From Pristiophorus japonicus (lineage: Eukaryota): DNA of 64,000 nt. The position numbers and the translations under genes are program-made. Under the pieces are notes generated by a model, which saw only the letters and a list, made by a program, of their open reading frames with translations, did not search any database and was not told the origin of the DNA. Location: positions 21,824,001 to 21,888,000 of the forward strand of contig NC_091999.1 of the NCBI RefSeq assembly GCF_044704955.1, written 5' to 3'. Each line of letters begins with the position of its first letter. Position 1 is the first letter of the stretch. Below, piece by piece: positions 491-59,841 of this stretch.

Positions 491-949
491 AGGGACATTT
501 CTTTATTCGCTTCTGGCATATGGGTGTGGGTGTCGCTGGCAAGGCAAACATTGATGGTCTATTCTTAATTGGCCTTGATAAGCAGATGGTAAGCTGCCCC
601 TTGAACCGCTGCAGTCCATGTTATGAACGGACCTCCACATTGTTTGGTAGCGGGTTCCAAAATTTGACCCAGTGACTATGAAGGAACGGTAATAAGTTCC
701 TAGGTCAGGATGATGTGTGATTTGGAGGGATACACGGAGGTGATGGTGTTCCCATGAGCACGCTGCCCTTGTTCTTCTTGGTGGAAGAGGTCGCAGGTGT
801 GGAAAGGGCTGTCGAGGATATCTTGGCGAGTTGCTGCAAAGCATCTTGGGGGTTTTAATCACTGCAGACATGGTGCGCCGTTGGGGGTGGGAGGGATTAT
901 TTAATGTGGTGGATGGAGTAAAATAAACTTGAGATGGGTCTACTGTAGT

Positions 950-2470
950 GTAGTGGAGTCTTTTTGTGTCCTCGTCACACATTGCTTTTTCTCCCATCTT
1001 TGTATCATCAGAAAACCTGGCTATGTTGCTCTCGATGCATTCTTCAACGTCGGTAGATTGTACATAGAGGGGTTCCCAGCACTGATTCCTGCAGCATCCC
1101 ACTAGTTACTGAATGCCAACCCGAGAATGAACCTTTGATCCTGACTCTCGGTTTTCTGTTAGTCAGCTAATCCTCTATCCATGCTAATATATCAGCCCGA
1201 ACCCCGTGAATGTTTATCTTGTGCAGTAACCTTTTATGTGGCACCTTATCAAATGCCTTCTAGAAGCCCAAATACATCACATCCACTGGTTCCGTTTTAC
1301 CCACCCTGTTTGTTACCTCCTCAAAGAATTCCTGAAAATTTGTCAAACATGACTTCCCCTTCATAAATCCACGCTGACTTTGTCTGACCGAATTTTGCTT
1401 TTCCAAATATCCTGCCACTGCTTCTTTAATAATGGACTCCAACATTTTCCCAAGCGCAGATGTTAGACTAACTGGTTTATAGTTTCCTGCTTTTTGCCTG
1501 CATCCTTTTGCAAATAGGAGCATTAAATTTGTAGTTTTCCAATCTGCTAATCACCTTAAATCTGTGTCCTTTGTTCTCGATCTTCCCACCAATGGGAACA
1601 GTTTCTCTCTACCTACTCTATCTAGACCCCTTATGATTCTGAACACTTCTATGAAATCTCATCTCTACCTTTCTGCTCTAAGGAGAAAAGTTCCAACTTC
1701 TCCAGGCTATCCACATAACCGAAGTACCGTATCCTTGGAACCACAATTGTAAATCTTTTCTGAATCCTCTCTAAGGCCTCACATCCTTGCTAAAGAATTG
1801 GACACAATATTCCAGGTGAGGCTTAAACAGTGTTTTATAAACGTTCATCATAACTTCCTTTCTTTTGTACTCTATGCGTGTATTTACGAAGCCCAGCATC
1901 ATGTAATCTATTGACCATTGTCTCAACCGGCCCTGCCACCTTCAATGATTTGTGCACATATACCATCAGGTCACTGTGTTCATGCACCTACTTTAGCATT
2001 GTACACTTTAGTTTATTTTTCCTCTCCTCATTCGTCTTATCAAAGTGATTCATTTCACACTTTTCTCCGTTTCATTTGCCACGAGTGTGCCCATTCTACC
2101 AGCATGTCTACGTCATCTTGAAGTCATCACTATCCTCCTCACTGTTCACTCTACTTCCAAATTTTGTATCATCTACAAATTTCGAAATTTTACCCTATAC
2201 TCCTAAGTCTCAGTCATCAATATAAATGAAGAAACGCAGTGTTCCTGGTACCAATCGCTGCAGAATACCACAGTGTACCTTCCCCCAGTCCAACACAAAA
2301 TAACTGGTCACCACTACACTGTGGTTCCTGTCACTCCGCCAATTATGTATACCATGCTGCCACTGTTCTCTTTATTCTGTGGGTTTAAATTTTTATGGCA
2401 AGGATATTATTAAGGCACTTTATCAAACAACTTTTAGAAGTCCACCACATCAACCTTATAAACTACGACT
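950..2470 (-). mobile_element. CR1-type LINE ORF2 (RT) fragments, degenerate
   Basis: Minus-strand peptides NYKPVSLTSALGKMLE, GFMKGKSCLTN and FSDDTK are CR1 RT motifs; many stops and frameshifts. Confidence 0.85.
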
Positions 2471-2589
2471 GGGTAAATACTGCGACGGGGTCTGGTGTAG
2501 TGAAAGAAATAATGCCAGATAATTAGAGATTTATTAACCTTCTGCCAGGTACAGGTGCAGTTTCATTTTTTACCATCATGGGCACTAAT

Positions 2590-3095
2590 CATAGAAACAT
2601 AGAAAATATGTGCAGGAGCAGGCAATTCGGCCCTTCGAGCCTGCAGCACCATTGAATATGATCATGGCTGATCATACAACTTCAGTACCCCACTCCTGTC
2701 TTCTCTCCATACCCCCTGATCCCTTTAGCCGTAAAGTCCACATCTAACTCCCTTTTGAATATATGCAACGAACTGGACTCAACAAATTTCTGTGGTAGAG
2801 AATTCCACAGGTTCACACTTCTCTGGGTGAAGATGTTTTTCCTCATCTCTGTCGTAAATGACTTACCCCTTATCCTTAGACTGTGACTCCTGGTTCTGGA
2901 CTTCCCCAACATCAGGAACATTCTTTCAAGATCTAACCTGTCCAATCCCGTCAGAATTTCATATGCTTCTCTGAGATCCCCTCTCATTCTTCTAAATTTC
3001 AGCGAATATAAGGCTAGTCAATCCAATATTTCTGCATATGTCAGTCCTGCCATCCCGCGATTCAGTCTGGTGAACTTTGGCTGCACTCCCTCAAG
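2590..3095 (-). mobile_element. CR1 LINE 3' end
   Basis: ORF 2682-2987 (RGDL..SRTRSHSLRIRG..VNLWNSLP) plus a (TTTCTATG)n tail, read as ATAGAAAC repeats at ~2590-2606. Confidence 0.85.
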
Positions 3096-3417: not shown

Positions 3418-3550
3418 NNNNNNNNNNNNNNNNNNNNNNNNNNNNNNNNNNNNNNNNNNNNNNNNNNNNNNNNNNNNNNNNNNNNNNNNNNNNNNNNNNN
3501 NNNNNNNNNNNNNNNNNNNNNNNNNNNNNNNNNNNNNNNNNNNNNNNNNN
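3418..3550. other. Assembly gap (133 N)
   Basis: Run of N. Confidence 1.
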
Positions 3551-5056
3551 AACACACATAAACATATACCAAACACTTTTGTGTTCTCTTTTCAGTTGTT
3601 CATTTCACAAGGTGAGAACATATTTTCCGGTGGATATTAGGACACTGTGGCCGCCCATCCGGCGGTGCTCTGAGATCACGGTTCCAGGCTCTGTCCTACA
3701 TAATCAGTGGGTCACGTCAAATACTGGATGAAAAACAATCCTTAACGTTAAAGAACTTGGAGAAATAGGCACAGGACAACACAAGTGTGAATTAGTAACC
3801 TCAAACCCACAGATTTTGCTAGTAGTTCAAAGTGCAGTGAATTGCTCACCTTCCGTCCTGTCCCTCAATCCCAGTCCATTACTGGAAGATTGTTACAAGA
3901 TTCACTCATCCTTTCAACACATTTATTACCGTCATAATAACAGATCAATTAGAGATTGCACACACGTGCTGATAGCTGTTAACAAATCTAAGCATATACT
4001 TCCAAACAAAAAAGTATTGCATCCTCACACCCACACATATATACATCTTTATTTATATTAATATCTGTCAATCCCTCTTTATATCTCCTGCCTATGTAAC
4101 AGACGCATGTGCAAGTGCTGAAATAACTGAGGCAGGGTCGATAGTATAAGAAATACAGACAGGGTCCAGCGCACTAATAGTTTAGACAAGATCTAATGTA
4201 ATATGAAGAGAGACAGGCATTTATTATAATATATTTCAGCCATGGTCTATGGCAGGAATAACTGATGCAGTGCCTCGTGTAATATAAACAGAGACATGGT
4301 CGAGTTTAATATAAACTGAGACGGAGGTAGGGATGGGTGCACGGAGTGAGCGATTGATGGAGGGAGCGATGGAGGAATGGAGGAGTGGAGCAAGGAAGGT
4401 GTAGTGTATTGGACGGGTGGAGTGCGGACGGAGGGAGGGAGAGGTGTGTCCAAGGAGGGAGCGATTGATGGAGGCAGGTATGGAGGGCGAGAGGGATAGA
4501 GAAATGGAGTGATGAAGGAATGGAGAGAAGGAGAGGCGAGTGGTCAGAGGGAATGATGAATTATCTCCCAATTTACCCGATCAAAACTTTTCCTGATTTT
4601 GAACACCTCTATTAAATGGCCCATAACTTGCTCGGCTCTGAGGAGAACAGTCCCAGCTTCCAGCTGCTCTGATGGTGCAGCTCACACAATACAAATCTCT
4701 TAAGTCTGTGAGTCGTTCTGCCTGGGGCACTTCCAGATGTTCCCTGTGGAATCACTGACACTTTTATATGAACCCAGTGAAAATCACAGTGTGGTAATGA
4801 TATCTCAGGCAAGATGAGAGAACTCGCTCCTGATGATAAATGGAGCGTTGTAAGACTGGGCTCAGACCCTGAACTTCAGACATGATGAGCTGAATGGCAG
4901 CATTTTAAAATACAAGCTGTGATATGTTCAAGATTCGGCTCAGTGGGATCACTCTCGCCTCTGATGCAGAAGGTCACAGATACTAAACCCCGCTCGAGAG
5001 AGCTGAGCCGATAATCGAAACCGGCACGCCTGGTGCCAGTACTGTGGAAGTGATGG

Positions 5057-5400
5057 ATGAATAAGGTGGATGAATTAACTGTGCAAATAGATGTTAACGG
5101 ATATGATATGATTGTGATTACGGAGACGTGGCTCCAGGATGATCAGGGCTGGGAACTCAACATCCATGGGTATTCAACATTCAGGAAGGAAAGAGTAAAA
5201 GGAAAAGGAGCTGGGGTAGCATTGCTGGTTAAAGAGGAGATTAATGCAATAGTTAGGAAGCACATCAGCTTGGATGATGTGGAATACATATGGGTAGAGC
5301 AACAGAACATCAAAGGGCAAAAAACGTTAGTGCGAGTTGTGTACAGACCTCCAAACAGTAGCAGTGATGTTGGGGAACGCATCAAACAGGAAATTATAGG
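5057..5400 (+). mobile_element. CR1 LINE APE-endonuclease fragment
   Basis: ITETWL, GVALLVK and VYRPPNS motifs; very similar to 43600-43935. Confidence 0.9.
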
Positions 5401-6119
5401 TTATCACTAGAATGATTTTCCGTAAATTCCATGCTCACCACATTAAAAATAGGATCGGAAAATAATGAATTGATCAACACGGTATCTAATGAAAACTATT
5501 TCCAAATAAAGACCATTCTGGACCATTCAGTCCCTTTATTCAGTACAGGATACACCGTGTTCCTGTTACCCGTGTCTGTTACATAGTCGGTCGCTATTAA
5601 AGTTAGCTGCAAGGATTTGGATATCGAGGTTTGCTGATCACATTATCGGTTCTGATTCACAAGTTTCTCTCATAAAACGCAGGTCTGAAGCGGGACGGAC
5701 CCACTTTCTTATGTGTCTCCGTCAACAACTCACTCCTGAATCATCAGTCAAGCGGACTTATTTTACAGCTAAATTTACAAACGGCTGTCGTCGGGTCACA
5801 GACTCAGGGGCAGTTATTGAAATGCAATGAGAGACAATTGTGTAATGTGAGGAGGATGATCTCATCTCCAGACCAAAAGTGTGTAGCTTTAGCCAAGTAC
5901 ACCGTAAATAGAATCACATTACCCATCTCCCGCACTCGGTTACATAGGTGATAACAATTCAGATTATAGGGGATACTTTATTGGTACAGATGCATGGATA
6001 GATAGCGGGAGATGGAGAAACAGAAACTGGCAGTATCTTTAGACCCTGATAATGTAATTCATTCTCAGAGATTCACATCCTCTGTGAAGGAGTGAGGAAA
6101 TAAAGGGATTTAATTTACA

Positions 6120-6245: not shown

Positions 6246-6332
6246 GGTCACTGGGACCGCAATACAACAGTCTGGGAGTGGGTTTGTTCAGTGAGTTCTT
6301 GCCGGAACCATTCACCACACATTGCCAGGAGG

Positions 6333-6378
6333 ATGAGGTCGGCGATTTCTCTCAGTCTGTTACTGGCTTTCTTTTCCC
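6333..6378 (+). CDS. IGHV: IgM VH leader exon ([15 protein letters not shown]-)
   Basis: ATG at 6333; 46-nt phase-1 exon; donor C|GTGAGT at 6379; hydrophobic signal peptide. Confidence 0.95.
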
Positions 6379-6505
6379 GTGAGTAGTTTTTATTGTCCAA
6401 TCTCTCACTGTTACTGTCTCAGTGTTAGTCTCTCTCTGGAATGTTACAGAGTCAGGAATCATTTCACCAGGATTGAATCTTCGGGTATTTTGATTATTTT
6501 TACAG

Positions 6506-6810
6506 GTGTCCAGTCGGATGTGGTGTTGACTCAGCCCGAGGCAGAGATCAGGATTCCCGGAAGCTCCCTGAGACTGACCTGTAAAACCAGCGGCTTCGAT
6601 CTTGGTGGCAGCTACATGTACTGGATCCGCCAGAATCCCGGACAGGGGCTGGAGTGGCTGGTTCAGTATTACAGTCCATCGAACAAGTATTACGCCGCAG
6701 GGATTGCGAGCCGATTTACTGCATCCAAAGACACTTCAAACAACATCTTTGCGCTGGACATGAAGAATCTGAAGAGCGAAGACACCGCCATCTATTACTG
6801 TGCAAGGTAC
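6506..6810 (+). CDS. IGHV: Shark IgM-type VH exon, open frame
   Basis: Acceptor TTTTACAG at 6505; [56 protein letters not shown] with canonical Cys and Trp. Confidence 0.97.
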
Positions 6811-6849
6811 CACAGCGAGAGGAACCAGGGCTGGACCTGTACAAGAACA
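6811..6849 (+). other. 23-bp-spacer recombination signal sequence (RSS) of VH
   Basis: Heptamer CACAGCG (6811-6817), 23-nt spacer, nonamer ACAAGAACA (6841-6849). Confidence 0.93.
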
Positions 6850-7256
6850 GATCGAGGGGGAATTCAACAACTGACATCATAACCTGATGGTCATTAATTG
6901 TGTCAAATGCAATGTTACCGGCAATGTACAGAACAAGACCATAAACCGCTTCTTACAAAACTAACACACTGAGAATTCAATGGTGAAAATATAACACACT
7001 AACCCATGTACTGAGGGGAGGTTTTGATTATGCTCCTGTTTAATGTTAACCGTGTCAGCAATTGCAGAGCTGGAGGTGATGCTCGATTCACTGTGCCTGG
7101 TACATGCAGGGAGCTGGTTAGAACTGTGTTCACTTTCAATTGTGCTATGTAAACTGTTGGCTAAATTCTAAATTTGATCAGAAGCGAATGTGTATTGGAA
7201 GTGAATGTCTATTTGACGTGAATGTTGAGAGTCAGTACTGAGCAGAGAGTGAGTGC

Positions 7257-7284
7257 AGTATGTGTGCGGGTTCCTGTCACTGTG
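7257..7284 (-). other. 12-bp-spacer RSS preceding the fused DJ
   Basis: Nonamer-like AGTATGTGT (7257-7265, 6/9 match to GGTTTTTGT), 12-nt spacer, perfect heptamer CACTGTG (7278-7284). Confidence 0.75.
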
Positions 7285-7352
7285 GGACTGCGGGAGTGGG
7301 TACATTGCCAAGGACTACTGGGGACAAGGGACCATGGTGACGGTGACTGCAG
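7285..7352 (+). CDS. IGHJ: Pre-joined D(-D)-JH segment (DCGSGYIAKDYWGQGTMVTVTA)
   Basis: D1-like GGACTGCGGGAGTGGGT directly after the heptamer, then about 11 junctional nt, then a trimmed J with WGQG; donor G|GTAAGG at 7353; no RSS between D and J. Confidence 0.85.
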
Positions 7353-7389
7353 GTAAGGAACATTCACTCATTCAGTAACTCTTGTATTT

Positions 7390-8640
7390 GTGTCTTTATT
7401 TTATATTTCTGTTTATTTTAATAATTATTTCGTTCACTGAAACTTAGGTTCAGTGGATTTTGTTTTGAGATTTTTTGCAATGTTCAATGTGATTCTGCTG
7501 CAAAGTGATTATAGAATTCAACTGTTTCTCCACAGAAAATGTTGTTGATGTGATTTGGTGTTTATTTGCTGACGAGACATGTGCCTGGGTTACTCTAAAT
7601 ACATTATGGTTTTTACACTGTTTGATGTTTCTGCAATGTTTAATTTTGGTGACCATTAATTGCTGCAGTTTTTCTGATCGAATGCAAACATTGTGTTTAA
7701 ATGTGTTTAAAAGAACATTGTAGGCACAAAACAGAAAGCTTAGCGACCAGTAAATATTCTTAAGGAATTTTAAGTTTTTTAATGAAAATTGGATTGTCAT
7801 CTACTGACCGAATGTTCCCGAAATCTCAGATTCAATACGTGAGCTGTTACTGTAATTAAGTACTGAACAATTAACATATTTCACGCTGGGACAAATTAAA
7901 TTAATATTATTAACATTATTATAATGTAGCAATATCATCACGTTTTATTAAATATGCTATAATATCAACATTAATGTATTTAACATGATCTGTCTAATCA
8001 CAATTCTGCTCTCATTATTTTATATTTCTGTTGAATTCAATCTTTAGTTATTTCAGTGTTAGGCGGGTTCAGTGATTTTGTAATGAGATTTTTTGCAATG
8101 ATACATTTGATTCTGTTGAAAGGGTTGATGAAATGAAGGATCTGCTCCATGAAAGGTTCTGTCGAGGGATTCCGCCCCTCAGTGATGTGATTTAGTGTTG
8201 ATCTGCTGAGGAGAGATGTGCCTGTGTTACTCAGAATACCTAGAATTTGTGAATCTAGGCGTTTCTACAATGTTCAATATCGGTGTCAGCGGGCAGCAGC
8301 AGGTTTGTGCTCGAATGCAAACACGATATGTGTTTGAAACTGTTTGAAAACAGTTTATAGGCAGAGAACAGGACGGGTTTAGAAATCAGAAATCATTGAA
8401 AGGTATTTTAACATAACAATTGTACAAGTGATAATTATATATTCAACTATTAATTTATGTTTACGATGCTGATATTTTATTGTGCGAAATGTAACTAATT
8501 GCCATCTGAATAATTAATGTGTTCAGTATGTAGTTGAATTAAATTAATATTAACAACCGATTATAATGCGATAATATCTCCCAGTGTTATTAAAATATGC
8601 TATAAGTCCAATGTTAATTTATTTAATATTATTCGCCTTC
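7390..8640 (+). repeat. Old ~620-bp tandem duplication at the start of the J-C intron
   Basis: Collinear similar blocks at 7395/8015, 7546/8183, 7678/8311 and 7893/8537. Confidence 0.75.
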
Positions 8641-14044: not shown

Positions 14045-14344
14045 TAACACCGTCTCCCCCCACCCTCTACGCCCTGCTCTCCTCCTGTGAACAACCCAGC
14101 GCCGATGGCTCCATCACGTACGGCTGTTTGGCAATGGACTACTCCCACGACATCACCAGCCTTTCCTGGAAGAAAGATAAAGTGCCGATCACCACTGGAT
14201 TGAAGACCTACCCGCCAGTGCTCAACAAGAAGGGAACCTACACCTAGAGCAGCCAGTTAACCATCACCGAGTCAGAGGTGGGGAGCAGCACAATCAACTG
14301 CGAGGTTCGACGTGGTGTGTCGGTCTGGGCCATCACAATACCAG
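14045..14344 (+). pseudogene. IGHM: IgM Cmu1 exon with in-frame stop (TAG 14245-14247)
   Basis: Acceptor CCTTCCCAG at 14044; [55 protein letters not shown]; donor G|GTTAGT at 14345. The frame is otherwise open. Confidence 0.93.
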
Positions 14345-14688: not shown

Positions 14689-14800
14689 TGCCAGGTTTGT
14701 GTTAGTCTGACAGCAAAGAACCCGTTAAAATATAAGGACACTTTGCATTTCTTAATCATTTATTTTGCAAGCAATGTCAGTAATATGTCTTCTCTTGAAG

Positions 14801-15118
14801 ATCCTGAACGGGACATCGTTCCTCCAACTGTTCTCCTCACACTGAGTTCCACTGAACAAATCACCAGCAGCAGATATGCAAGCGCCGTGTGTTCAATCAT
14901 CGATTTCAGGCCAAAGTCACTGACTGTGAATTGGCTGAAGAGTGGACAACTCATGGATTCGGGCTTCGTCACCTCTCCCGTCTTTGAGGTGAACGGGAAC
15001 TTCTCGACGGCCAGTCGGCTGACAGTCCCCGCCGAGGAATGGTTCACCGGCTCGGTCTACACCTGCCAGGTCACTCATCAAGGGGTCATGCAAAACCATA
15101 ACTTCAGCAGATCTCAGG
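14801..15118 (+). CDS. IGHM: IgM Cmu2 exon
   Basis: Acceptor TTGAAG at 14800; [35 protein letters not shown]; donor G|GTAAGA at 15119; 318 nt, phase 1-1. Confidence 0.95.
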
Positions 15119-17078: not shown

Positions 17079-17387
17079 TGGATGTCCCATGCAGCGATTC
17101 AAAAATCACTCTTCGCTCACCATCACTGGAACAGATATTACTGGAGGCAACGGTGACCTTAACCTGCGTCGTGTCAGACGCTCCTTATGGGCTCACTGTG
17201 ACCTGGACTCGAGAAAAGGAGGCTTTGAAATCAGAAATTGCCGTCCAACCGGGAGAGGATCCCAACAGCGTGATCAGCAACTTAAAAATCTCGACACAAG
17301 ACTGGCTGAGTGGGGATAAATTCTACTGCGTGGTGAGCCATCAGGATATGCCGACACCGATCAGAGAATCCATCCACAAGGAGAAGG
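17079..17387 (+). CDS. IGHM: IgM Cmu3 exon
   Basis: Acceptor TTTTGCAG at 17078; [36 protein letters not shown]; donor G|GTGAGC at 17388. Confidence 0.96.
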
Positions 17388-18286: not shown

Positions 18287-18678
18287 CGAAAGATCCACGG
18301 GAACCAGCCGTGTCTGTCCTCCTGCCCTCGGCAGAAGAAGTCTCCGCTCAGAGGTTGGTCAGCCTCACCTGCTTAGTGAGAGGTTTCTCCCCCCGAGAGA
18401 TCTTCGTCAAATGGACCGTGAATGACAAGCCGGTGGATTCGGGCAACTACAAGAACACCGAGGTGATGGCGGAGAACGGCAGCAGATCCTTCTTCATGTA
18501 CAGCCTGCTATCCATTGCAGCCGAGGAGTGGGCCAGCGGCGCTTCTTACTCCTGTGTGGTGGGACATGAAGCGATCCCCTTGAAGATCACCAACAGAACC
18601 GTCAATAAATCCAGCGGTAAACCCAGTTTCGTCAACATTTCCCTTATTCTGATGGACACCATCAATTCTTGTCAATGA
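18287..18678 (+). CDS. IGHM: IgM Cmu4 exon with secretory tailpiece
   Basis: Acceptor CTACAG at 18286; [48 protein letters not shown] (N-glycan site, penultimate Cys). Internal donor G|GTAAA at 18617 serves the membrane form. Confidence 0.97.
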
Positions 18679-18722: not shown

Positions 18723-19639
18723 GGGTTTTTTGTCCAATCGTGAGTTAAACACACAGCCGCTCAATTAACTATGTTTCCTATTTTTGCCAATGTGAGGGCT
18801 GTTTATCTGAAGTAGGGTGTTTGCGCGCCTCGGTCCCAATGCTTGTACAGCCAGCGCTCCCAGCTCAGATACACCATGGGTTGGAGACTGGGTGAAGTTC
18901 TCTTATTACAGAATTCCTGAAAGTAACTTCAGCAGAGAGAGAGTAAAGGCTAATTTTAATTCACTGTACCTCTCACAGCCACCAGCGAGAGGGGAATGGG
19001 AAATGTGTAATTCACGTAACCCCCACTGCCCCTCCTGCAGGGAGATGGGAAGTGAACCACTCTCTTTTAAATGCACTAAGTTGTTATCAGTACAATGTCA
19101 CATTCTAACCCATGGTCTAAAGATTTTAAACTTGCCACATGAGTATTATCTTCTGAAATAACTGTTTATTCCACGTAATATTTTTAAATAGGGTTGGGGT
19201 GCAACAGTCCCTGTTAATTGTAAACTAACATGCTGAATTCTAATGGGCCATATCTAAACTGGTGATTTAATCCTCTGCTAGTTTCTCACAGTTGTGTCCC
19301 TGATGTTTCTGAGGCCCATCGGTTGAATTGTTGCATTCCTTCGGCTGACATCACATTGCGCCTCACACAGGACACATTTACACAGAGCAGGGAGAATACT
19401 TGTGAAAGTGAGTTTGTCTGTGTTCATATGTAAGTGTGTTGATGATTTTTTATAAGTGTGTGTGTTTTTGTGTAAGTGCACAATTACACACAAACACACA
19501 TAGACTTACATATAAAGACATACATTAACACTCTGACACATAATATTATACATAACTAGAATATAATGAAAACCATCATTGTCAAATCCAGTTCTTGATG
19601 CTCTCTGAATATTTTAACAATAGCAATAATACACGTCAA

Positions 19640-20620
19640 TCTAAACGCACACTTACACAACGGATACTTACACACACTTACACACACACAGACAAACACA
19701 TCAATCCACACAGACACTGACATAAAGCACACCTACACACACATAAACACATACATCAATCCACACACACACTTACACAAAACACACTTTCACACACAGA
19801 CATACGCACCAATCCATACACATACACTTACAAAACACCACTTATACACACATAAATGCATACATCAATCCACACACACACTTACACAAAACACACACAC
19901 ACTCGTAAACAAACGCATCAATCCAAACACACATTTACACTAAACACACATACACTTACATGCAAACATACTATTGCACTTAGACACATACATCAATCAA
20001 AACACACACTTTCACAAAACACACACACACAAATTTACCTGCAAACCCATTGTTACACATAAACACACACACGCTTAAACCTAAACATGAACAACACTGA
20101 TACATAGCCATACACTTACAGAAAAACACACAACTGAACAGACTTACACAAGCATGAACATGCATATAAATCCAAACACAAACTAACACAAAACAAACAC
20201 ACACAAACTTATAGGTATACACAATGTTACACGAAAACTCACACACGCACACTTACACCTCAACAAAAACAAACACTTATAAATAACCATACACATACAC
20301 TTGTAGGGAAACACACACATGAACATACATATACACAAGGATACACATACACATAAGCACACACATGAACACCCTTGCACACACACACACACACACACCC
20401 CACACACAGACACACACAAACACTTAGATATGAACATGCTTACACATAAAAGTACACACACTCACCTACACCAAATCGCACACTCGCAACTAAATATAAA
20501 AACACACACTTACATGCATTCTTAAACAAAACATAAACAAAGATATACACACACATACACAATCTTACAAATACACACACGCACAACCTCACAGATCAAC
20601 ACCCTCACAGGGAAACACAA
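19640..20620. repeat. CA-rich low-complexity/degenerate microsatellite in the Cmu4-TM1 intron
   Basis: About 1 kb of (CA)n, CACTTACAC and CATCAATC variants. Confidence 0.9.
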
Positions 20621-21312
20621 ACACTGACTAATCCAGAACAAGAGATAGTCATACAGTGATATAGACATTAAAGAGCACAAACAAAAACGTCAGGCTTTAG
20701 AAGAATGTAGAACTAAGATGCATTTTTATGACGGACAATGTATCCAACGCTTGGCCTGAATAAATAATTCCTGATACCATAATATCTCACAATTCACTAT
20801 TCTGGTCTTACACATACACTGGATCAATGTAGTTGTTGCAAACTGACATGTTATTTATGTTCAGAGCATTGCCGTAACAAATAAAAAAACAAGGTTATAA
20901 CTCACAACTGATCTCTTACCTAGCCTCCTTGGCAGCCTCCAACTAAGTAACTACGTTAACCTAGCGGAAAAATAATCGATATCCTGCTGTAAACCTTCCG
21001 CGATGTTTCATCGTCTTATTTCCGAATGATAGATCGTTGCTATGTCATCCAAAATCAATTAGCCTCTGACATGGAAGCAAAACTATCATTTTTTCCAAAA
21101 CGGACGACAGGGGGATCGTAAAGGAAGAGCGGCTGTGGAGTGAGGAACAGTGAGAGATTGTTGAGAGTGATTAACTTAACACAAAATATACATTGAAAGT
21201 CCAATTAAAGAACAAACTAATACCTTAAGGGAAAAAAGAGAATATAAAATCATAGCATGATACCCGGGATTAATAAACGATCTGAATATATTTCCTCCGT
21301 ACATCCCCGTAG

Positions 21313-21440
21313 ATTCCTCAGACCACATCTGGAATGAAGACTATGAGGACGAGAGCGGCAACATCTGGACAACCGCTTCCACATTCATCATCCTGTTCTT
21401 CCTGAGCATTTCCTACAGCACTGCCGTCACTCTGGTGAAG
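21313..21440 (+). CDS. IGHM: IgM TM1 exon
   Basis: Acceptor CCCCGTAG at 21312; [43 protein letters not shown] (CART motif); donor AAG|GTTGGA at 21441. Confidence 0.95.
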
Positions 21441-21580
21441 GTTGGAAAATTCAATCCGCTCACACTTCCATCTGACTGAAGCCGTTTGACAAATCTCTGG
21501 ATGTTTCATTAATAAAAACCCTGAGATAAATGCCCCAGACCACTAAACTTCCGCTTAATTCTTTTATCTCACTTTTGCAG

Positions 21581-25060: not shown

Positions 25061-25595
25061 TGTATTGTATAGGGTTAATCACATAGGGTTAATTATGATA
25101 TTTCGACATTTACAGTGTGTTTCTGCTTCATGCCTCGTGGAATGTTGTTGATGCAGAGAGAGAGAGAGAGAGAGACCTTGATGCGCACACCATCTTGTTT
25201 ATGGGACAGTCGGCGCCTCGAGGTCTCATGCTTTGTGAAAGAACAGCTGGGGCCTTACTGATTAGGAGTTGGCCATAAGCCACATGCACCCATGTTTGTT
25301 CAATAGTATAAAGGAATGGAACTGTCCAGTAGCTCTTTTAACTTCACCTTGGACCATGATTCACGAGCGGTGCCGGGACCCCCAAGGCTCCAGACTAGCC
25401 GTCGTTGCGGAGTTCCCGACGGGCCGAAGGCTTTGAGCTTTGTTACATCTTATCATACTTCTCTTTTCTTCATAAACTGTATTATGTTTCTTTTCCCTCA
25501 GTAAACGGTGTTTTATCTTTACTTCATTTGTCTTGTCTCTTATTTAACATTCATCCAGATCCCGAACCTGGGTCTATTATTATCGATCCAAAAAA
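25061..25595 (+). repeat. ERV 5' LTR
   Basis: Starts TGT; about 93% identical by eye to 30902-31430; TATAAA at 25307, AGTAAA at 25500. Confidence 0.95.
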
Positions 25596-25598
25596 TGT

Positions 25599-25616
25599 TG
25601 GCATCACGAACAGGAT
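25599..25616 (+). other. Primer-binding site complementary to tRNA-Ser(CGA)
   Basis: TGGCATCACGAACAGGAT versus TGGCGTCACGAACAGGAT expected from the recalled vertebrate tRNA-Ser(CGA) 3' end (17/18). Confidence 0.8.
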
Positions 25617-25624
25617 CTGGTAAA

Positions 25625-27290
25625 ATGTTTAAGAGAAAAGACAAGGAGCAGTCTCCTCCTGCGGGAGAGAAGTATAGAATACCAGGGTGGAGCATGAGGG
25701 ATGAGTGTTTTGGCTCTCTTGCCAATGTGCTAGCCCAGTTTGCACCCCCGCAGTATTGGGATATGCAGTTATTGGAACAGAGCAAAGATAGAACCGTAGC
25801 CCACGCGGTACTGTCTCTCCTGGAGGAAGCGGGCTTCCCACAGGAGAAAAGTAATCCCTCACAAATGGGATGGATTTTGTTGACAGCATTAAAGACGATG
25901 TGTAAACAACTTAAGGAAAGTGAGGCAGAAAACCTAGAGTTAAAAACAGCTGTTAAGGTTTTTCGAAAGTCAAAACTCGACTCTGACTGAAGCGGTCCAC
26001 ACTGCACAATAACGGGTGGACAAGCTCAATGAACAATCAGAAACTTTAATATGCCATCTGGTGACAGTACATCATTATTAAAAAGCCAGACGACGGAAAT
26101 TACAGATAGATCGGTCAAAGGTACGTGCATTCGTAGCTGGACCCACTTGGGATCCGGCTCATTGGGAAGGAGACATCTGGTACTCCTCTGACTCAGAATA
26201 TGAATGGTCAGATGGAGAGGGTGGGAACGGGAGGAAACTAAAAACTCTCCCCCATACGCTCCGAGCAAGAAAGCTAGACCCCTTATGACAAATAAGGTGA
26301 AACAGCAAGATGGGGAACAGCCAGTAACCACTAGAGGGGTGCGTGACTTCACCACTTGTGAGTTACAAGAAATAGGGTCTCGATTTCGCAAAAAACCCGA
26401 GGAATCATTGTCAGAATGGCTAACCCGGATTTGGGATCAGGGAACATCAGGCGTAATACTTAACCCTGAAGAGTTAATAAAAATGAGGACTATGATTACG
26501 GACTACCATATTACAGCAGTGCTACGAAATGTCCAGGGCACAAGTTCGCTATGGGACATGGTTACTATAGGGGTCCAGCAAAATATCCCTCTGCCGTTGA
26601 TTGGGAAGGGGAGGTAAAACCTTGGAGTACTGTGGTGGAGGGTCCGATACAAATGCACAACATGGAAACACAGGGAGGAACATATCACCAACAATATGGG
26701 GGGCCAGATCAGGAGCTCTTTACGGCAGGAATGCAGAGCAGGCTGATGAAGAGTGACCCTCCTATGCTGAGGGGTGCGCTACGTGCATTATTGGGACCAG
26801 CCCAAGAGCAGCGGGTAGGGGATGCTATCCTGTTGTTAGGACAGTTAGAGGATGTAGAAGATAGTGTGCGAGAGTCGAGAACGGCTAATGTAGAGGGGGA
26901 TCGGGACCAGCGACAACGTTCGACCTCTGGGAAAGATATAAGGTCAGGAAAGTCAAAAAAAAAGAATTGCGCAGAGGGACATGTACGCGGCTTTATTGAA
27001 AGCAGGGGTCCCCAAGGAAAAAAATTGATGCAATCCCAACAGGAGCAATGTATTCTATGTGGAAGCAACACTGCGTCCCGGGAACAGGGAAGGGTAAAAG
27101 GAGGGAGGTAAGGGAGACTAAGTCGGATAGCGTCAAGTCTGCGGATGCGGAGAAACCATCTCCCACTAGTCGATATCCCAGCGTAGAAGAGCTGTGGAAG
27201 GCTAGTAATCCCCTCGACTGGGGTGTGGCCTGGATCCGGGAGTACTCCCCGTTAGAACCACATCAACCCAAGCTCCCGGGGATCTGAGGC
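25625..27290 (+). pseudogene. gag: ERV gag (ERV-L/Fv1-like), with stops and frameshifts
   Basis: ATG at 25625; fragments 25625-25990, 26204-26617 (ESLSEWLTRIWDQG..ILNPEE, an ERV-L/Fv1-type capsid motif), 26551-27111 and 27048-27287. Confidence 0.8.
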
Positions 27291-27299
27291 CACACATTC

Positions 27300-30200
27300 C
27301 GATTACGATACATTGGCGGGGTGGGGGCGAACATACAAAGAGATGTTGCTTTACTAGACACAGGGGCAGAAGTTACTATTATCCATGGAAACCCTAGGAA
27401 ACACACAGGGACCTGTATGATGATTAATGGGTCGGAGGGGGCAGAAACGCCCGCTGTCCGAACAACTATCAGAATGGCGTTGGGAAATGGGCCTCCGCGC
27501 TGCGTAACGGTCTTAATATCGACAGTAAAGGAGCATATTATTGGGATGGACCTTTTAAAGGGAACCACACACAACATCTCGTTCGGGCGATTCTCATTCG
27601 GGATATGGGCGATCATTGAGATTGCAGAGGAAGCAAAGTGGGAACCAGTGGTAATACCACGGCCATTGCGTATAGTGACTATAAAACAGTACCAAATACC
27701 TGGGGGACACAAAGAAATAGGGGAAACCATACAAGGGCTCTTGGAAACGGGAATCATTAGACATGTGGTGTCCCCTACAAAAGCCCTGTTTGGCGTGTGC
27801 AGAAACCCGACAAAAGTTGGAGGATGACTGTGGATTACCGACAACTGAACAAATGTGCCCCTCCCCTGGCAACCGCTGTCCCAGATGTAGTAACTATAAC
27901 AGAGCGGCTGTCTGAAGAAGGTGCGGAGTGGTATGCGGTAACCGACCTGGCCAATGCCAGTTTCGCCATTCTAATAGCGGAAGAATCCCAGGACCAGTTT
28001 GCACTCACTTGGGAAGGGAGGCAATACACGTTTAAACGCCTACCTCAAGGTTACCTACATAGCCCTACCCTATGCCATGGATTGGTGGCCCGGGAACTGG
28101 ACATGTGCACGTTGGCTCCTAATATCTCACTGGCACACTACATCGATGAGGTACTAATAAGGGGTCCCACCGAGGCTGTGGTGTCAGAAGCCCTAGCTAC
28201 TTTAGTCCAACACATGCGAGATCTGGGCTTGGAGATAAATCCGAAGAAGGTGTAGGGCCCTAGCCAGATTGTCCAGTTTGTGGGGATCCAATGGACTCGC
28301 GGTGAGCGCATCATACCCGAGCCTGTGAAGAATAAAATTCAATAAATGGTCACCTCCACGAATAAAACTGAGACACAACGGTTCGTGGGACTATTGGGTT
28401 ACTGGAGGAGACACATACCTCACCTCACGTTGCTATTAAAATCGTTGTATGCCGTAACACGAAAAAAGGCCCACTTCGAGTGGGGAAAGGAACAACAGGT
28501 GGCTTTTGATGCAGCCAAAGAAGCCGTAGCTCAAGCTTTACCCCTAGCCCCGCGAGTGCCTAGACAGCCTTTTGAGCTCCAGGTATCCGTTACCAATGAT
28601 ACTGCAGTATAAAGTTTGTGGCAGGTTCAACATGGCACTCGTATACCGTTAGGGTTATGGTCTAGAACATTGACAGATGCTGCTGCTCGTTACACTCCAT
28701 TTGAGAAACAATTATTAGCATGTTATTGGTTCCTAACAGAAACAGAAGGACAGACAGGGGACGACAAATTCAGTTTAAGACAAGACCTACCCATATTATC
28801 CTGGGTTCTCTCAGAAAATGAGACACACAAGGTCGGGCGAGTGCAGCAAAGCTCCATAGTGCGCTGGAAATGGTATATCGCAGACAGAGCAAGTAAAGGG
28901 AAAGAAGGAATCACCCGACTACATGAGCATGTGGCTGGATACCCACAAACAGCTGAGAGTGAACTTACGCAGTCGTCTGTCAGTTTAACCAAAGAGTCAC
29001 CGATCTCCTGGGATGTGTCTTTTGAACAGTTAACACCCGAAGAACGTAGCCATGCCTGGTTCACAGGTGGCTCAGCGGTCTGGCGAAATGGCCTTCGGTG
29101 ATGGCGAGCCGCTGCCTTCAATCCAAAAAACCAGACAATTGTGCATGATGAGGGCGTGGGAGGCTCCAGCCAGCAAGCAGAACTAGCAGCTGTAGTCCCT
29201 TCGCCAGAAGAGGAACAGCAACAAATACACATATATACTGACTCATGGGCAGTAGCCAATGGCATGGCGGGCTGAATGCGAAACTGGCATGAACATAACT
29301 GGCAAATAACTGGGAAAGACTTGTGGGGAAAGTACCTATGGGAACAAATATGTTCCAAAGCCCAGAAAATGAAAATAACTGTATATCATGTGGACACCCA
29401 CATGAAAAACACTTCAAAGACTTCTGAATATAATAACACAGTTGATAATATAGCCCGGGTACGGGCTGTCAAAGAGGCGGAAGAGGAAGAATATGGCATA
29501 GGCAAGTGGGCCCAATACAAATCTGGACATTTTGGCATTCAGGGTACGATACATTGGGCACGAAATGGGGGGTTACATTTGACTACGGACGGTGTTAATC
29601 AGATCATAAACACCTGTGAAATTTGTCAAAAGGTGAAGCATTTCCCCCTACAACGACAATTAAGAGAGGGACTCAACCAGCACAAATATGGCAAGTTGAT
29701 TATGTAGAACCTTTACCATTGCAACAACGGTTCCAATATTTTCTCACTGTTGTTGATACCTATTCTATACTTTTGATCGCTTATCCTGTGACTAAAGCGA
29801 ATCAACCAAGTACGATTAAAGGACTGGAGAATTTAATCACATACTACGGTGAACCAGCAGAAGTACAGTCCGATAATGGGTCGCACTTCACAGGTCAAAC
29901 AGTGCAACAGTGGGCGGTAGATAACGAGATTTATTGGATGTTTCACATACCTCACTATCCGCAAGCTGCAGGTTTAATGGAACGCATGAATGGATTACTT
30001 AAACAACAGATTAAAATATTAACTCCCACTAACACATTGCAAGGGTGGTTAAAGATTTTCCCACAAGCAGTGCGCAATCTGAATCACTGACCATTGTGGG
30101 GGGAAACTCCCATAAGCCACATGTTAGGCAAAGTTAGTGTCCCTACTATTGAAAAAGAAAATCAGACTCAGAGCACAGTTTGTGAAGGAGGAAAAGTGTG

Positions 30201-30336
30201 GGTGCAGTACCCCCAGAAACGCTTACAAGCAGGGGAAATCTTTGTGAAAGAAGAACAAAACACTTATTGGGTGCTCCTGACCGGTCAAGATGTTCCTCCC
30301 TCTGTTGACAAGGGTAAATTGACTAAACGGGGTTGA
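27300..30336 (+). pseudogene. pol: ERV pro-pol (protease, RT, RNase H, integrase), disrupted
   Basis: LLDTGA; WRMTVDYRQLN, LPQGYLHSP, YIDE (mutated YxDD); RNase H WFTGGS..YTDSW; integrase WQVDY..SDNGSHF..LMERMNG; several stops and frameshifts. Confidence 0.93.
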
Positions 30337-30378
30337 ATTAATATAATTATGCTTCCTCCCACAGGAATTCAGCCCAAA

Positions 30379-30840
30379 ATGGCGACTTACCAACTCGTGC
30401 TGGCCAGCCTCTGTGTCTCGTTATCTGTGACTGTGCTACTTCCATCCTCAAACACAGCATGGGGTGGCGGATAGCTAACACTGATCGTATGCAAGACAAT
30501 TACTAACCTTCCTCCACACTGTAGACCTAACTCGTTAAGCTCAATTTCTAAAAGATAATCAAAAGGTCACTGACGAATTGAGCAAACGAGGGCGTACTCT
30601 TCATACTCTGCAAGTTGCTATGAGTTACAGTGAAGGCGCCTTGGTCAGAGTTGCGACAACGGTCAATGACCTTACTGTACACCATTGGTGGGACATCTTT
30701 TACGAATGGTCCCCAAAGACATCTGCCGCTTTGAAGCTGTTACTACATCCTATCGTTGTTTTACTCATCGCGTTATTACTGATATTTATGTATTCTTTGA
30801 TGTAGATTGTGGGCGTTGTTCGCGCATACACAATATGTAA
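30379..30840 (+). pseudogene. env: Internally deleted env-like remnant
   Basis: Splice acceptor CTTCCTCCCACAG at 30364; signal-peptide-like MATYQLVLASLCVSLSVTVLL; C-terminal HHWWDIFYEWSP plus a hydrophobic TM segment (HPIVVLLIALLLIFMYSLM). Confidence 0.65.
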
Positions 30841-30901
30841 CTGATGCATTACGCTTTCAACTCGATTATATTACTTAGAATGTCTAAATATCAAGATTGG
30901 A

Positions 30902-31430
30902 TGTTATTGTATAGGGTTAATCACATAGGGTTAATTATGATATTCCGACACTTACAGTGTGTATTCTGCTTCATGCCTCGTGGAATGTTGTTGATCCAGA
31001 GAGAGAGAGACCTTGATGCGCACACCATCTTGTTTGTGGGACGATCAGCGCCTCGAGGCCTCATGCTTTGTGGAAGAACATCTGGGGCCTTACAGATTAG
31101 GAGTTGTCCATAAGCCACATGCACCCATGTTTATTCAATAGTATAAAGGAACGGAACTGTCCAGTAGCTCTTTGAATTTCACCTTAGACCGTGATTCGCG
31201 AGTGGTGCCAGGACCCCTAAGGCTCCAGACCAGCCGTCGTTGCGGAGTTCCCGACGGGTCGAAGGCTGTGAGCTTTGTTGCATCTTATCATACTTCCCTT
31301 TTCTTCGTAAACTGTATGATGTTTCCTTTCTCTCAGTAAATGGTGTTTTATCTTTACTTCATTTGTCTTGTCTCTTATTTAACATTCATCCAGATCCCGA
31401 ATCTGGATCTATTATTATCGATCCAAAACA
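30902..31430 (+). repeat. ERV 3' LTR
   Basis: TGT...AACA termini; preceded by a decayed PPT-like TCAAGATTGGA. Confidence 0.95.
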
Positions 31431-38160: not shown

Positions 38161-38650
38161 ATTGCTGCACTGTCAGTGTTGCCATCTTTCAGATGAGTCG
38201 TTCAACCGAGGCCCCATCAGCTCTCAACCAATATCACTCAAACAGATTCTCTGGCCATTGCTGTTCATGGCAGCTTGCTGTGTGCAAATCATCTGCTGCA
38301 TTTCCTATACTACAACAGTGAATGCACTTCAAATGTACTTTGGTGTTGTTGCACTTCATTGGCTGTAAAGCACTTTGAGGTCATGTGAGGTGTTGCATAA
38401 GGACAGGTCTTTGTTAAATGAAGGAGAAAAGTTCCAAAAAAGGAACAGTTAGTAACAGTACAACAATTAGTCTCTTCTTATATTGGAGAATTCAAGGAAT
38501 CGACACACTGTGTGTTGGAACCAAAGCTGATTTATTTGTCAGATATCCAGAACATTAAATCCAGCCCAGTTACAGGGGAAACACAGCCCGACTGTCAGAA
38601 TGAACACGATTCAGTCCTGATGTGATTCACAGCAGAATCCAACCCTGCAG

Positions 38651-39678
38651 TCACTTGTGAACTCGCAGGTGTCTCAGCAGGTTGTATGGGGCAGTGAATC
38701 CCTTCCAACAGATGGAAAGGTGAATGGCCTCTCCCCAGTGCGAACCCGCTGGTGTGTCAGCAGGTTGGATTTCTGAGTGAATCGCTTCCCACACTCTGAG
38801 CAAGTGAACGGCCTCTCCCCAGTGTGAACTCGCTGGTGTGTCAGCAGGTTGTATGGAGCAGTAAATCGCTTCCCACAGACGGAGCAAGTGAACGGCCTCT
38901 CCCCAGTGTGAGTGCATTGGTGTTTCCTCAGGTCATTTCTGCTTTTAAAGCTCTTCTCACAGTCAGAACATTTAAACGGTTTCTTATTGGTGTGAACAAG
39001 TTGGTGTGCCAGTAGGTTGGATGAACAAGTGAATCCCTTCCCACACACGGACACAGGTGAATGGCCACTCCCCAGTGTGAACTGGCTGGTGTGCCAGTAG
39101 GCTGGATGAATCACTGAATCCCTTCCCACACATGGAGCAGATGAACTGCCTCTCCCCGGTATGTATTCGCTGGTGTCTCAGCAGGTGGGATGGCCGAGTG
39201 AATCCTTTCCCATACTCTGAACAGGTGAACAGCCTCTCCCCAGTGTGAATGCGCTTGTGAATTTCCAGCTCAGAACGGGTAACTGAATCCCTTCCCACAG
39301 TCTCCACATTCCCACGGTTTCTCCATGCTGCTGGTATCTCTCCAGATTGGATGATCAGTTGAAGCCTCGCCCACACACAATACGTTTACAAATTCTCTGC
39401 GCTGTGAATGGTGCGATGTTTTTTCAGGCTGTGTGACTGGTTAAAGCTCTTTCCAAAGGCAGTGCCATGGAACACTCTCACTCGGCTGTGTGTGTCTCAG
39501 TGCTTTTGCAGTCACACTGATGTTTGGAATATTTGCCTGCAGGCAGAAGAGACAAACATTTCTCCTTCCACATTCAAAGGCCAATGATATTCATGTTGCG
39601 GTGGATCAAGTGACTCTGTGAGATCTTGGTGATGTTTGGTTCCAGTTTCCCATCTGCAAATCTTCCCCTTCTAATCCC
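38651..39678 (-). pseudogene. C2H2 zinc-finger pseudogene (about 8 fingers, frameshifted)
   Basis: ATG at 39326 ([14 protein letters not shown]) followed by a frameshift; TGERPF linkers across three frames; ends HLRVHK*. Confidence 0.88.
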
Positions 39679-43049: not shown

Positions 43050-46000
43050 ATAATAAAGGGAAAAAGTCACTTGGTGGGTGTATTCTATAGGCCGCCGAAC
43101 AGCAGCAACTCTGTTGGTCAGAGTATAAACCACGAAATAGTGGGGGCTAGTAAAAAGGGAACAGCAATAATCATGGGTAATTTTAATCTCCATTATGATT
43201 GGACAAATCAAGTTGGTCAGGTAGCCTTGAGGAAGTGTTCATCGAGTGCATAAGGGATGGGTTCCTTGAACAGTATATAACGGAACCAACCAAGGGGCAA
43301 GCTATCTTAGTTCTGGTCCTGTGTAATGAGACAGGATTAATAAACAATCTCCAAGTAAAAGATCCCCTTGGAATCAGTAGCATGATTCAATTTCAAATTC
43401 AGATGGCAGGGGGATGGGAACCTATGTAGGGAGGCAGAGGGAAATAAAAGGGAGACAGAGGCAAAAGAGAGAAAGGAGAATAGTAAAAGTGGAGGGCAGA
43501 GAATCCCAAGGGCCACATTACAGCAAAATTATAAATCGACAATGTGTGTTAAAAAGACAAAGCTGAAGGCTCTGTGTCTTAATGCAAGGAGTATCCGTAA
43601 AAAGGTGGATGAATTAACTGTGCAAATAGATGTTAACAGATATGGTGTGATTGGGATTACAGAGACGTGGCTCCAGGATGATCAGGGCTGGGAACTCAAC
43701 ATCCACGGGTATTCAACATTCAGGAAGGATAGAATAAAAGGAAAAGGAGGTGGGGTAGCATTGCTGGTTAAAGAGGCGATTAATGCAATAGTTAGGAAGG
43801 ACATTAGCTTGGATGATGTGGAATCTATATGGGTAGAGCTGCAGAACACCAAATGGCAAAAAACGTTAGTGGGAGTTGTGTACAGACCTCCAAACAGTAG
43901 TAGTGATGTTGGGGAAGGCATCAAACAGGAAATTAGGGGTGCATGCAATTAAGGTGCAGCAGTTATCATGGGTGACTTTAATATGCATATAGATTGGGCT
44001 AACCAAACTGGAAACAATACGGTGGAGGAGGATTTCCTGGAGTGCATAAGGGATGGTTTTCTGGACCAATATGTCGAGGAACCAACTAGGGGGGAGGCCA
44101 TCTTAGACTGGGTGTTGTGTAATGAGCGAGGAATGTGTAATGTGAGGCCCCTTGGGGAAGACCATAATATGGTGGAATTCGACATTAGGATGGAGAATGA
44201 AACAGTTAATTCAGAGACCATGGTCCAGAACTTAACGAAGGGTAACTTTGAAGGTATGAGGCGTGAATTGGCTAGGATAGATTGGCGAATGATACTTAAG
44301 GAGTTGACAGTGGATGGGCAATGGCAGACATTTAGAGACTGCATGGATGAACTACAACAATTGTACATCCCTGCCTGGCATAAAAATAAAAAGGGAAGGT
44401 GGCTCAACCGTGGCTATCAAGGGAAATCAGGGACAGTATTAAAGCCAAGGAAGTGGCATGCAAATTGGCCAGAAATAGCAGCGAACACAGGGACTGGGCT
44501 AAATTTAGCACTCAGCAGAGGAGGACAAAAGGTTTGATTAGGGCAGGGAAAATATAGTACGAGAAGAAGCTTGCAGGGAACATTAAAACGCACTGCAAAA
44601 GCTTCTATCGATATGTAATGAGAAAAAGATTAGTAAAGACAAACGTAGGTCCCCTGCACTCAGAATCAGGGGTAGTCATAACGGGAAACAAAGAAATCGC
44701 AGAACAATTGAACGAGTACTTTGGTTCGGTATTCACTAAGGAGGACACAAACAACCTTCCGGATATCAAAGGGGTCAGAGGGTCTAGTAAGAAGCACGAA
44801 CTGAGGGAAATTCTTATTAGTTGGGAAATTGGGTTGGGCACATTGATTGGATTGAAGGCCGATAAATCCCCAGTGCCTGATGGATTGCATCCCAGAGTAT
44901 GTAAGGAGGTTGCCTTGGAAATAGCGGATGCATTGACAGTCATTTTCCAACATTCCATAGACTCTGGATCAGTTCCTATGGAATGGATGGTAGCCAACGT
45001 AACCCCACTTTTTAAAAAATGAGGGAGGGAGAACAGGGAATTATCGAACAGTCAGTCTGACATCGATAGTGGGTAAAATGATGGAATCAATTATTAAGGA
45101 TTTCTTAGCAGCGCATTTGGAAAGAGGTGACATGATAGGTCCAAGTCAGCATGGATTTGTGAAAGGGAAATCATGCTTGACAAATCTTCTGGAATTCTTT
45201 GAGGATGTTTCCAGTAGAGTGGACAAGGGAGAACTAGTTGATGTGGTGTATTTGAACTTTCAGAAGCTTTTCGACAAGGTCCAACACAAGAGATTAATGT
45301 ACAAAGTTAAAGCACATGGGATTGGCGATAGTGTGCTGACGTGGATTGAGAACTGGTTGGCAGACAGTAAGCAAAGAGTAGGAGTAAATGGATATTTTTC
45401 AGAATGGCAGGCAGTGACTAGTGGGGAACCGCAAGGTTCTGTGCTGGGGCCCCATCTGTTTACATTGTACATTAATGATTTAGACGAGGGGATTAAATGT
45501 AGTATCTCCACATTTGCGGATGACACTAAGTTGGGTGGCAGTGTGAGCTGCGAGGAGGATGCTATGAGGCTGCAGAGTGACTTGGATAGGTTAGGTGAGT
45601 GGGCAAATGCATGGCAGATGAAATATAATGTGGATAAATGTGAGGTTATCCACTTTGGTGGTAAAAACAGAGAGACAGACAATTATCTGAATGGTGACAG
45701 ATTAGGAAAAGGGGAGGTGCAACGAGTCCTGAGTGTCATGGTACATCAGTCATTGAAGTTTGGCATGCAGATACAGCAGGCGGTTAAGAAAGCTACTGGC
45801 ATGTTGGCCTTCATAGCTAGGGGATTTGAGTACTGGGCAGGGATGTGTTACTACAGTGTACAGGGCCTTGGTGAGGCCACACTGGAGTATTGTGTACAGT
45901 TTGGTCTCCTAACTTGAGGAAGGACATTCTTGCTATTGATGGAGTGCAGCGAAGGTTCACCAGACTGATTCCCGGGATGGCGAGACTGACATATCAAGAA

Positions 46001-48336: not shown

Positions 48337-48935
48337 GTATTCAAAGGATTTGAAGATGGAAAACTCAAACCAAACATCACACCAAGATCTGATGGAGTCA
48401 CTCGATTCCTCAGGACCTGAATATCATCGGCCTTTCAATATAGAAGGAGAAATGTTTGTCTCTTCTGCCTGTGGGAAAAATTGCAAACATCAGTGTGACT
48501 GGAGAAGCACCGAGGCACACACACCCGAGTGAGTGTTCCAGTGCACTGACTGTGAAAAGAGCTTTAACCAGTTACACAGCCTGAAAAAACATCGCAGCGT
48601 TCACATCGGGGAGAACCGTACACGTGTTGTGTGTGTGGACCAGGCTTCAACTGAGCGTCCAACCTGGAGAGACACAAGGATACCCACACCATGGACAAAC
48701 CGTGGAAATGTGGAGACTGTGGGAGGGGATTTAGTTCACCGTCTAACCTCGATATTCATCAGCACAGTCACACCGGGGGAAGGGATTCACTCAGCCATCC
48801 AGCCTGCGAACACACCAGGGAGTTCACACCGGGAAGAGGCCGTTCACCTGCGCCCAGTGTGGCAGGGGATTCACTTGGTCATCCCACTTGCTGACACACC
48901 AGCGAGTTCACACTGGGGAGAGGCTTTCCACTGCT
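48337..48935 (+). pseudogene. C2H2 zinc-finger pseudogene (truncated, frameshifted)
   Basis: ATG at 48691 ([14 protein letters not shown]), a deletion inside finger 2, and truncation after about 3 fingers. Confidence 0.85.
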
Positions 48936-59705: not shown

Positions 59706-59841
59706 TAATCTGTGAACCTTGACCTGAACCTTCCAAAATGTTACTGATTTTGAGGAATAGACAAAATATCTAAGCATTGATAAATGCATCATCAAACATC
59801 TCCAACTGAGCTAACCTGCTGTAACTATGTCAGTATTTGTG

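Follow-up and report, generated by a model that had tools for sequence, protein, structure and literature searches.

A single complete IgM minicluster, with the sole V and the sole J found there, is contained in the 64-kb stretch of Pristiophorus japonicus DNA analysed here (64,000 nucleotides, hereafter the window). It is probably best described as a partly germline-joined squalomorph IgM minicluster with the layout V - D(D)J - Cmu, of which this copy is most likely a pseudogene. In this layout V is left free while the D-J side is fused, so that one 23/12 pair of recombination signal sequences (RSSs) is left at the V-D position. The features of the cluster are as follows.

6333..6378, + strand: leader exon 1, ending on the first base of an R codon; donor GTGAGT at 6379
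6506..6810, + strand: VH exon, open, with conserved Cys/Trp/Cys (Pfam V-set, E 1.5e-15)
6811..6849, + strand: V 23-RSS, CACAGCG / 23 nt / ACAAGAACA (consensus match 6/7 in the heptamer, 7/9 in the nonamer)
6850..7256, + strand: V-to-D intersegment DNA, 407 bp (contigs of paralogs and of another species align, 80-95% identity)
7257..7284, + strand: 12-RSS directly 5' of the coding piece, nonamer AGTATGTGT / 12 nt / heptamer CACTGTG (7/7 in the heptamer, 6/9 in the nonamer)
7285..7352, + strand: D(D)J coding piece, 68 nt, GGACTGCGGGAGTGGGT-ACATTGCCAA-GGACTACTGGGGACAAGGGACCATGGTGACGGTGACTGCAG, abutting the 12-RSS and followed by donor GTAAGG
7285..7301, + strand: D-derived part of the coding piece, 17 nt, GGACTGCGGGAGTGGGT (by comparison with the unjoined D of organism B)
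7302..7311, + strand: ambiguous 10 nt, ACATTGCCAA, either the untrimmed J 5' end or D2/N/P nucleotides (alignments end at 7312/7313)
7312..7352, + strand: J core (..DYWGQGTMVTVTA) with a normal WGQGTMVTVTA end; donor GTAAGG at 7353
14045..14344, + strand: Cmu1 exon, 300 nt, with an in-frame TAG (79% identical to Heterodontus mu; Pfam)
14785..15117, + strand: Cmu2 exon, open, limits approximate (tblastn with P0048; Pfam C1-set, E 3.4e-17)
17084..17386, + strand: Cmu3 exon, open, limits approximate (tblastn; Pfam C1-set)
18289..18678, + strand: Cmu4 exon and secretory tail, stop TGA (tblastn; Pfam C1-set)
21312..21443, + strand: TM1 exon, limits approximate (tblastn)

The exons were searched individually, and a spliced V-DJ-C model was left out. 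The leader was found to match a Heterodontus VH leader (P0003) in a protein database search, and the VH ends in ..TGT GCA AGG TAC, corresponding to ..TAIYYCARY in the protein. The mu exons are 62-83% identical to those of horn shark mu by tblastn with the Heterodontus sequence, and one V-set and four C1-set domains are recognised by Pfam. As in other IgM miniclusters, a leader and a VH with a 3' 23-RSS are followed on the same strand, within about 15-20 kb, by Cmu1-4, the secretory tail and TM1, which lie 3' of J and extend out to 21.4 kb. The separate D1, D2 and J of the canonical split form, each with its RSS, are not found between V and the J donor, where there is a single RSS.

The neighbouring DNA is rich in repeats. 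A long CA/TG-rich low-complexity tract (19600-20500) lies between Cmu4 and TM1, and 3' of the TM exon there is an LTR-retrotransposon-like insert (25500-31000) with RVT_1 at 27761-28252 and an integrase core at 29620-30087. LINE-type fragments with reverse transcriptase/endonuclease frames occur at 500-3000, 5054-5407, 43400-47100 (RVT_1 at 45003-45914) and 58600-63700, one such fragment being less than 1 kb upstream of the VH leader. Reading frames of C2H2 zinc-finger arrays are present beside the Ig cluster at 56600-57391 (- strand, 8 fingers), 38650-39400 (- strand) and 48533-48934 (+ strand), and 133 consecutive N, a gap or a mask, occupy 3418-3550, 2.8 kb upstream of the leader.

The preliminary description of this DNA stated that the VH keeps a 23-RSS and that a single 12-RSS lies downstream, the D 3' RSS, a separate D2 and the J RSS all being absent. 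A scan for RSSs from V to the J donor agrees with this on every point. The V 23-RSS was found at 6811-6849, and the 12-RSS, whose nonamer is also written ACACATACT, faces the coding piece in the opposite sense, with 407 bp between the two. At thresholds that both RSSs pass, no further matches were detected on either strand of the 64-kb window, for which the chance expectation from shuffled sequence is 0.06 matches for the 12-RSS and 0.15 for the 23-RSS. No further credible RSS was found between V and the J donor, the other match there being the weak CACACTG/24/ACACTAACC at 6965-7004. This match was considered as a relic D RSS and was rejected, since it has no partner RSS, is of chance-level quality, and lies in intersegment DNA that is kept in another species.

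The 68-nt coding piece is open in the J frame, with the translation DCGSGYIAKDYWGQGTMVTVTA, and it shares an identical FR4 with other shark IgM sequences (P0012, P0019). Its two ends were compared with unjoined segments. At the 5' end, a contig of a related species (organism B, run X5) aligns up to 7289, that is, over the first 5 coding nucleotides (GGACT), and then continues with ACAGTGGGT and CACGGTG. The unjoined D of organism B is thus GGACTACAGTGGGT (GGACT-AC-AGTGGGT), with its own 3' heptamer CACGGTG adjoining; the window reads GGACT-GCGGG-AGTGGGT at this place, with no heptamer after it. At the 3' end, a contig from the same sample as the assembly's probable own runs carries an unjoined J that reads CACTGTG|ACGGCATGGACTAC.. 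(ACGGCAT) and is identical to the window from 7312 (GGACTACTGG..). The unjoined J of organism B reads CACTGTG-ACTACCTC-GACTACTGG, with the J start ACTACCTCGACTAC. Because the 5' end is derived from D and the 3' end from J, and because the RSSs that flank the split segments are missing, the 68-nt piece is to be read as a D(D)J fusion rather than as a long J. Fusion, loss of RSSs and homology to split segments, by which a germline-joined gene is recognised, are all observed, with unjoined D and J aligning to the two ends. The proposal that the D-J side is fused with V left free was therefore borne out by the unjoined D of organism B and the unjoined J of the same sample.

A cluster that was never joined, in which an original light-chain-like V(23)-(12)J arrangement carries the 68 nt as a normal long J with its own RSS, would also present a V 23-RSS and a 12-RSS before J. 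This layout resembles that of lambda-type light chain loci, and J lengths do vary between clusters. It is rejected: the first 5 coding nucleotides (to 7289) and AGTGGGT match the RSS-flanked D of the related species, homology to the unjoined Js begins only at about 7302-7312, and the constant region is a standard mu. The long-J explanation is thus barely credible. A protein search with the 41-aa reading frame across the RSS and the DJ gave one match only, to an unrelated unjoined J (P0019).

The internal structure of the fused piece is less sharply defined than its two ends. The preliminary description parsed it as a D1-like sequence, an 11-nt junction and a 5'-trimmed J. The D-like stretch stands, with a length of 17 nt, while the trimming is doubtful, as the J may start at 7302. 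It also read ACATTGCCAAG as a trimmed and N-added junction and hence as a sign of germline TdT. The unjoined Js of the same sample and of organism B both begin with AC, and AC-ATT-GCC-AAG-GAC-TAC may equally be an untrimmed J 5' end, joined flush to a D with its full ..AGTGGGT. J 5' ends were also observed to vary in length across clusters and species (GM-DYW, YL-DYW, YYSF-DYW). The number of untemplated nucleotides is 0 under the flush parse and 5-11 under the trimmed and N-added parse, the divergence between paralogs being about 12%. Since both parses fit at this divergence, the claim of TdT activity is unsupported.

No D2 is recognisable within the 68-nt piece. In horn shark clusters, D1 carries 12- and 22/23-bp RSSs, D2 carries 12/12 and J carries a 23-bp RSS. 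If the D1 3' RSS here was of the 22/23-bp type, as in other sharks, joining D1 straight to J would violate the 12/23 rule and a D2 intermediate would be needed. Either D2 was trimmed away, or it is hidden in GCGGG/ACATT, or the 12/23 rule was broken.

Whether the join is inherited was addressed with contigs of four public runs, aligned to 6300-7700 at a likeness of at least 80%. Runs X1-X4 derive from one sample, probably that of the assembly itself, and are not independent support; the support is at the level of contigs. Three distinct contigs, each present in X1 and X3, were found to align without a break over 6975-7363, 7031-7342 and 7151-7441, with 33-48 mismatches, few gaps, about 85-88% identity, and no joint or loose end. 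A split cluster could not align in this way, so that the unbroken alignment across the RSS and the DJ indicates that diverged paralogs share the layout, and we infer that at least three paralog contigs carry the same D(D)J join. Because these diverged paralogs cross the RSS-DJ region unbroken, an old germline join is favoured over a somatic join or a misassembly, in keeping with the origin first proposed for this cluster.

A somatic DJ rearrangement or misassembly in the reference, with a true germline arrangement of V-D-D-J, would be compatible with several facts. The tissue sequenced is not on record, V-DDJ is known to occur as an intermediate of somatic joining in lymphocytes and thymocytes of the nurse shark (PMC2435157), and the alignments are of contigs, not reads. 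Against this, a clonal somatic join would be carried by very few reads and would be lost from the consensus, at least three diverged paralog contigs have the unbroken RSS-DJ layout, and the divergence of about 12% between copies implies age. A somatic or assembly origin is therefore very improbable.

The sequences are consistent with the following course of events. The ancestor may have been a V-D1-D2-J cluster whose D side was fused to J by RAG-type recombination in germ cells. Such a fusion would have left both the V 23-RSS and the 5' 12-RSS of the first D intact, while eliminating the D 3' RSS together with the RSS of J and any D2 that was still free. The joined cluster would then have been duplicated, giving rise to the several diverged copies that are now in the genome. 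A join that appears to be inherited, duplicated and diverged fits RAG activity in the germ line, to which the joined Ig genes of sharks are generally ascribed (PMC2193156).

Other joined contigs were also observed. Same-sample contigs (X1, X3; joints in 6802-7319) link V directly to J through GAATAGATGGTGGCTGGTACTCTCTTGCGGAT, and three more contigs (X1, X3) continue from 6806 with AGACATTGGCTGGTACTCTCTCGCGGAGTG. These V-J contigs have the appearance of a small germline gene family in which VDJ is fully joined and the CDR3 is ..G(G)WYSLA(D/E)W; alternatively, they could be clonal somatic joins. Organism B (X5; 6804-7316) has a high-depth V-to-J joined contig (GGAGGCAGTGAGTACTACTACCTCGAA) besides its unjoined D and J contigs, so that this species, too, has both split and joined IgM clusters.

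The preliminary description further presented the cluster as a working heavy-chain locus that rearranges in one step, like a light-chain locus. One half of this claim holds, in that the 23/12 pair obeys the 12/23 rule. Judged from its sequence, the convergent pair would permit one deletional V-to-DJ join, excising 6811-7284. An untrimmed V-to-DJ join is out of frame, so that the usual junctional variation would be needed, and the CDR3 of the product would be fixed C-terminally (..DCGSGYIAKDYW), with diversity at one junction only. The other half, that of a working locus, is not supported, in view of an in-frame TAG in Cmu1 and the lack of an upstream octamer. The TAG lies at 14245-14247 in an otherwise intact Cmu1 (GTYT*SSQLTIT), at a codon that is Leu or Gln in other cartilaginous fishes; the other mu exons are open. 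No octamer ATGCAAAT, with at most 1 mismatch, was detected in the promoter-proximal region of about 700 bp upstream of the leader. The sole 1-mismatch match, ATTTGGAT, is at 5615, 718 bp upstream of the ATG, and a TATA-like TATTTAA is present at about 6233. Shark VH promoters are taken here to require an octamer. Two features of a functional gene, uninterrupted frames and a promoter octamer, are thus both wanting, and on the strength of the Cmu1 TAG and the missing octamer we regard this copy as most likely a pseudogene; at best, it would serve as a non-productive substrate for recombination. Escape from this status, by the TAG being allele-specific or by skipping of the 300-nt Cmu1, is of low probability.

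It is quite unlikely that the copy is a working one-step heavy-chain gene with a semi-invariant CDR3, in which the TAG is allele-specific or bypassed, for example by Cmu1 skipping. In keeping with such a gene, V, the two RSSs and the J donor are intact, as are Cmu2-4, the secretory tail and TM1. The DJ has no stop in the J frame, the 300 nt of Cmu1 make its skipping frame-neutral, and early-life expression of joined shark Ig genes is possible (PMC2193156, PMC4279169). The TAG, however, is at a conserved Cmu1 position, no octamer is found within 700 bp of the ATG, and the joined H-chain genes of horn shark were not found to be expressed (PMC2193156). The single RNA contig that aligns on the stretch (X22) is also of no help to this explanation, as it is a VDJ-Cmu transcript of another cluster. 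A broader suggestion, unlikely and put forward tentatively, is that V-D(D)J IgM clusters may persist in sawsharks as a small, expanded subfamily. Certain members would have an intact Cmu and would use a single light-chain-like step to give semi-invariant, germline-encoded CDR3s, for example early in life; within it, the present copy would have decayed, or it might encode a Cmu1-less chain by exon skipping.

A database model of P. japonicus, P0001 ('Ig heavy chain Mem5-like'), has a V part that is identical residue for residue to the VH exon, and is 93% identical over the whole query, a query that includes intron read-through. After V, the model continues with ..AKDYWGQGTMVTVTA and then with the same Cmu1, ending at the TAG codon at 14245-14247. 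It also contains a spurious N-terminus of 80 aa and a non-canonical 'intron' that starts within the V RSS (..YHSE) and leads into the DJ (AKDYW..). P0001 is thus an automatic model of this locus, and its junction is an annotation artefact, not evidence of splicing. No other P. japonicus models were found in the P0001 protein search within its length range, for which full-length mu is too long. At loci of this kind automatic annotation goes wrong by placing a false intron between the V RSS and the DJ, an artefact typical of unrearranged Ig loci.

How does this cluster relate to the joined antigen-receptor genes already known? Shark germline-joined antibody genes are the main natural evidence for RAG acting in germ cells to reshape antigen-receptor loci. 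The germline forms given in reviews are VD-J, VD-DJ and VDJ (PMC5192425, PMC4279169, PMC3308330). The sawshark cluster is similar to the joined IgM clusters of horn shark and skate in that segments are fused in germline DNA without RSSs, which is ascribed to RAG in germ cells (PMC5192425, PMC3308330, PMC2193156). Those clusters exist in many copies, many of them without detectable expression (PMC5192425, PMC3308330, PMC2193156). In the horn shark and skate classes described in reviews, V is fused to D, whereas in the sawshark cluster the fusion is confined to the D-J side and V stands free. The cluster therefore does not belong to the VD-J or VD-DJ class: its V stops at 6810, where the 23-RSS is intact, and spacer DNA of 407 bp follows. 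The literature search, which had key older primary papers outside its scope, found no germline V-DJ or V-DDJ form named, and nothing on sawshark Ig loci.

A further likeness is to the somatic V-DDJ intermediates of nurse shark (Malecek et al., 2008; PMC2435157), which have the identical configuration of V-RSS, intersegment, and 12-RSS-D1D2J; in the literature read, V-DDJ is reported solely in this somatic role. These intermediates indicate that V-DDJ arises readily by RAG action and can proceed to V joining (PMC2435157). The nurse shark V-DDJ is somatic and was seen in single cells, whereas the sawshark form is in a reference assembly together with diverged paralogs, and so is probably inherited. 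In nurse shark IgM1gj, too, a mu-type gene is joined in the germ line and its CDR3 is set in advance (PMC4279169). The join in IgM1gj covers all of VDJ and rearrangement is unnecessary; the gene is without Cmu2 and is expressed in neonates. The sawshark cluster differs from it in that one join is still needed, all four Cmu exons are present, and Cmu1 has a stop.

IgNAR type III and bamboo shark IgNAR2/5/6 are similar in that fusion is confined to the D side and V is recombination-competent (PMC8692893). They differ in being of another isotype, and in having a D-D fusion with J still separate. Lambda-type light-chain V(23)-(12)J loci also have one 23/12 pair and one rearrangement step. This likeness is a functional analogy only, as the sawshark sequence derives from a heavy-chain D and J, with Cmu downstream.

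Overall, the probable germline V-D(D)J is a new configuration of a well-known phenomenon, predictable from the random order of RAG joining. The practical weight of the present copy is small, since it is probably a pseudogene. A heritable fusion of D and J only, in several diverged copies, would widen the catalogue of joined forms, in which those listed have V-D or all segments fused. Joined and split paralogs provide a natural pair for dating joins and for asking about TdT-like additions in germ cells. Finally, such a D-J-only fusion would show that germline joining can begin at the J end, as does somatic joining in the nurse shark.
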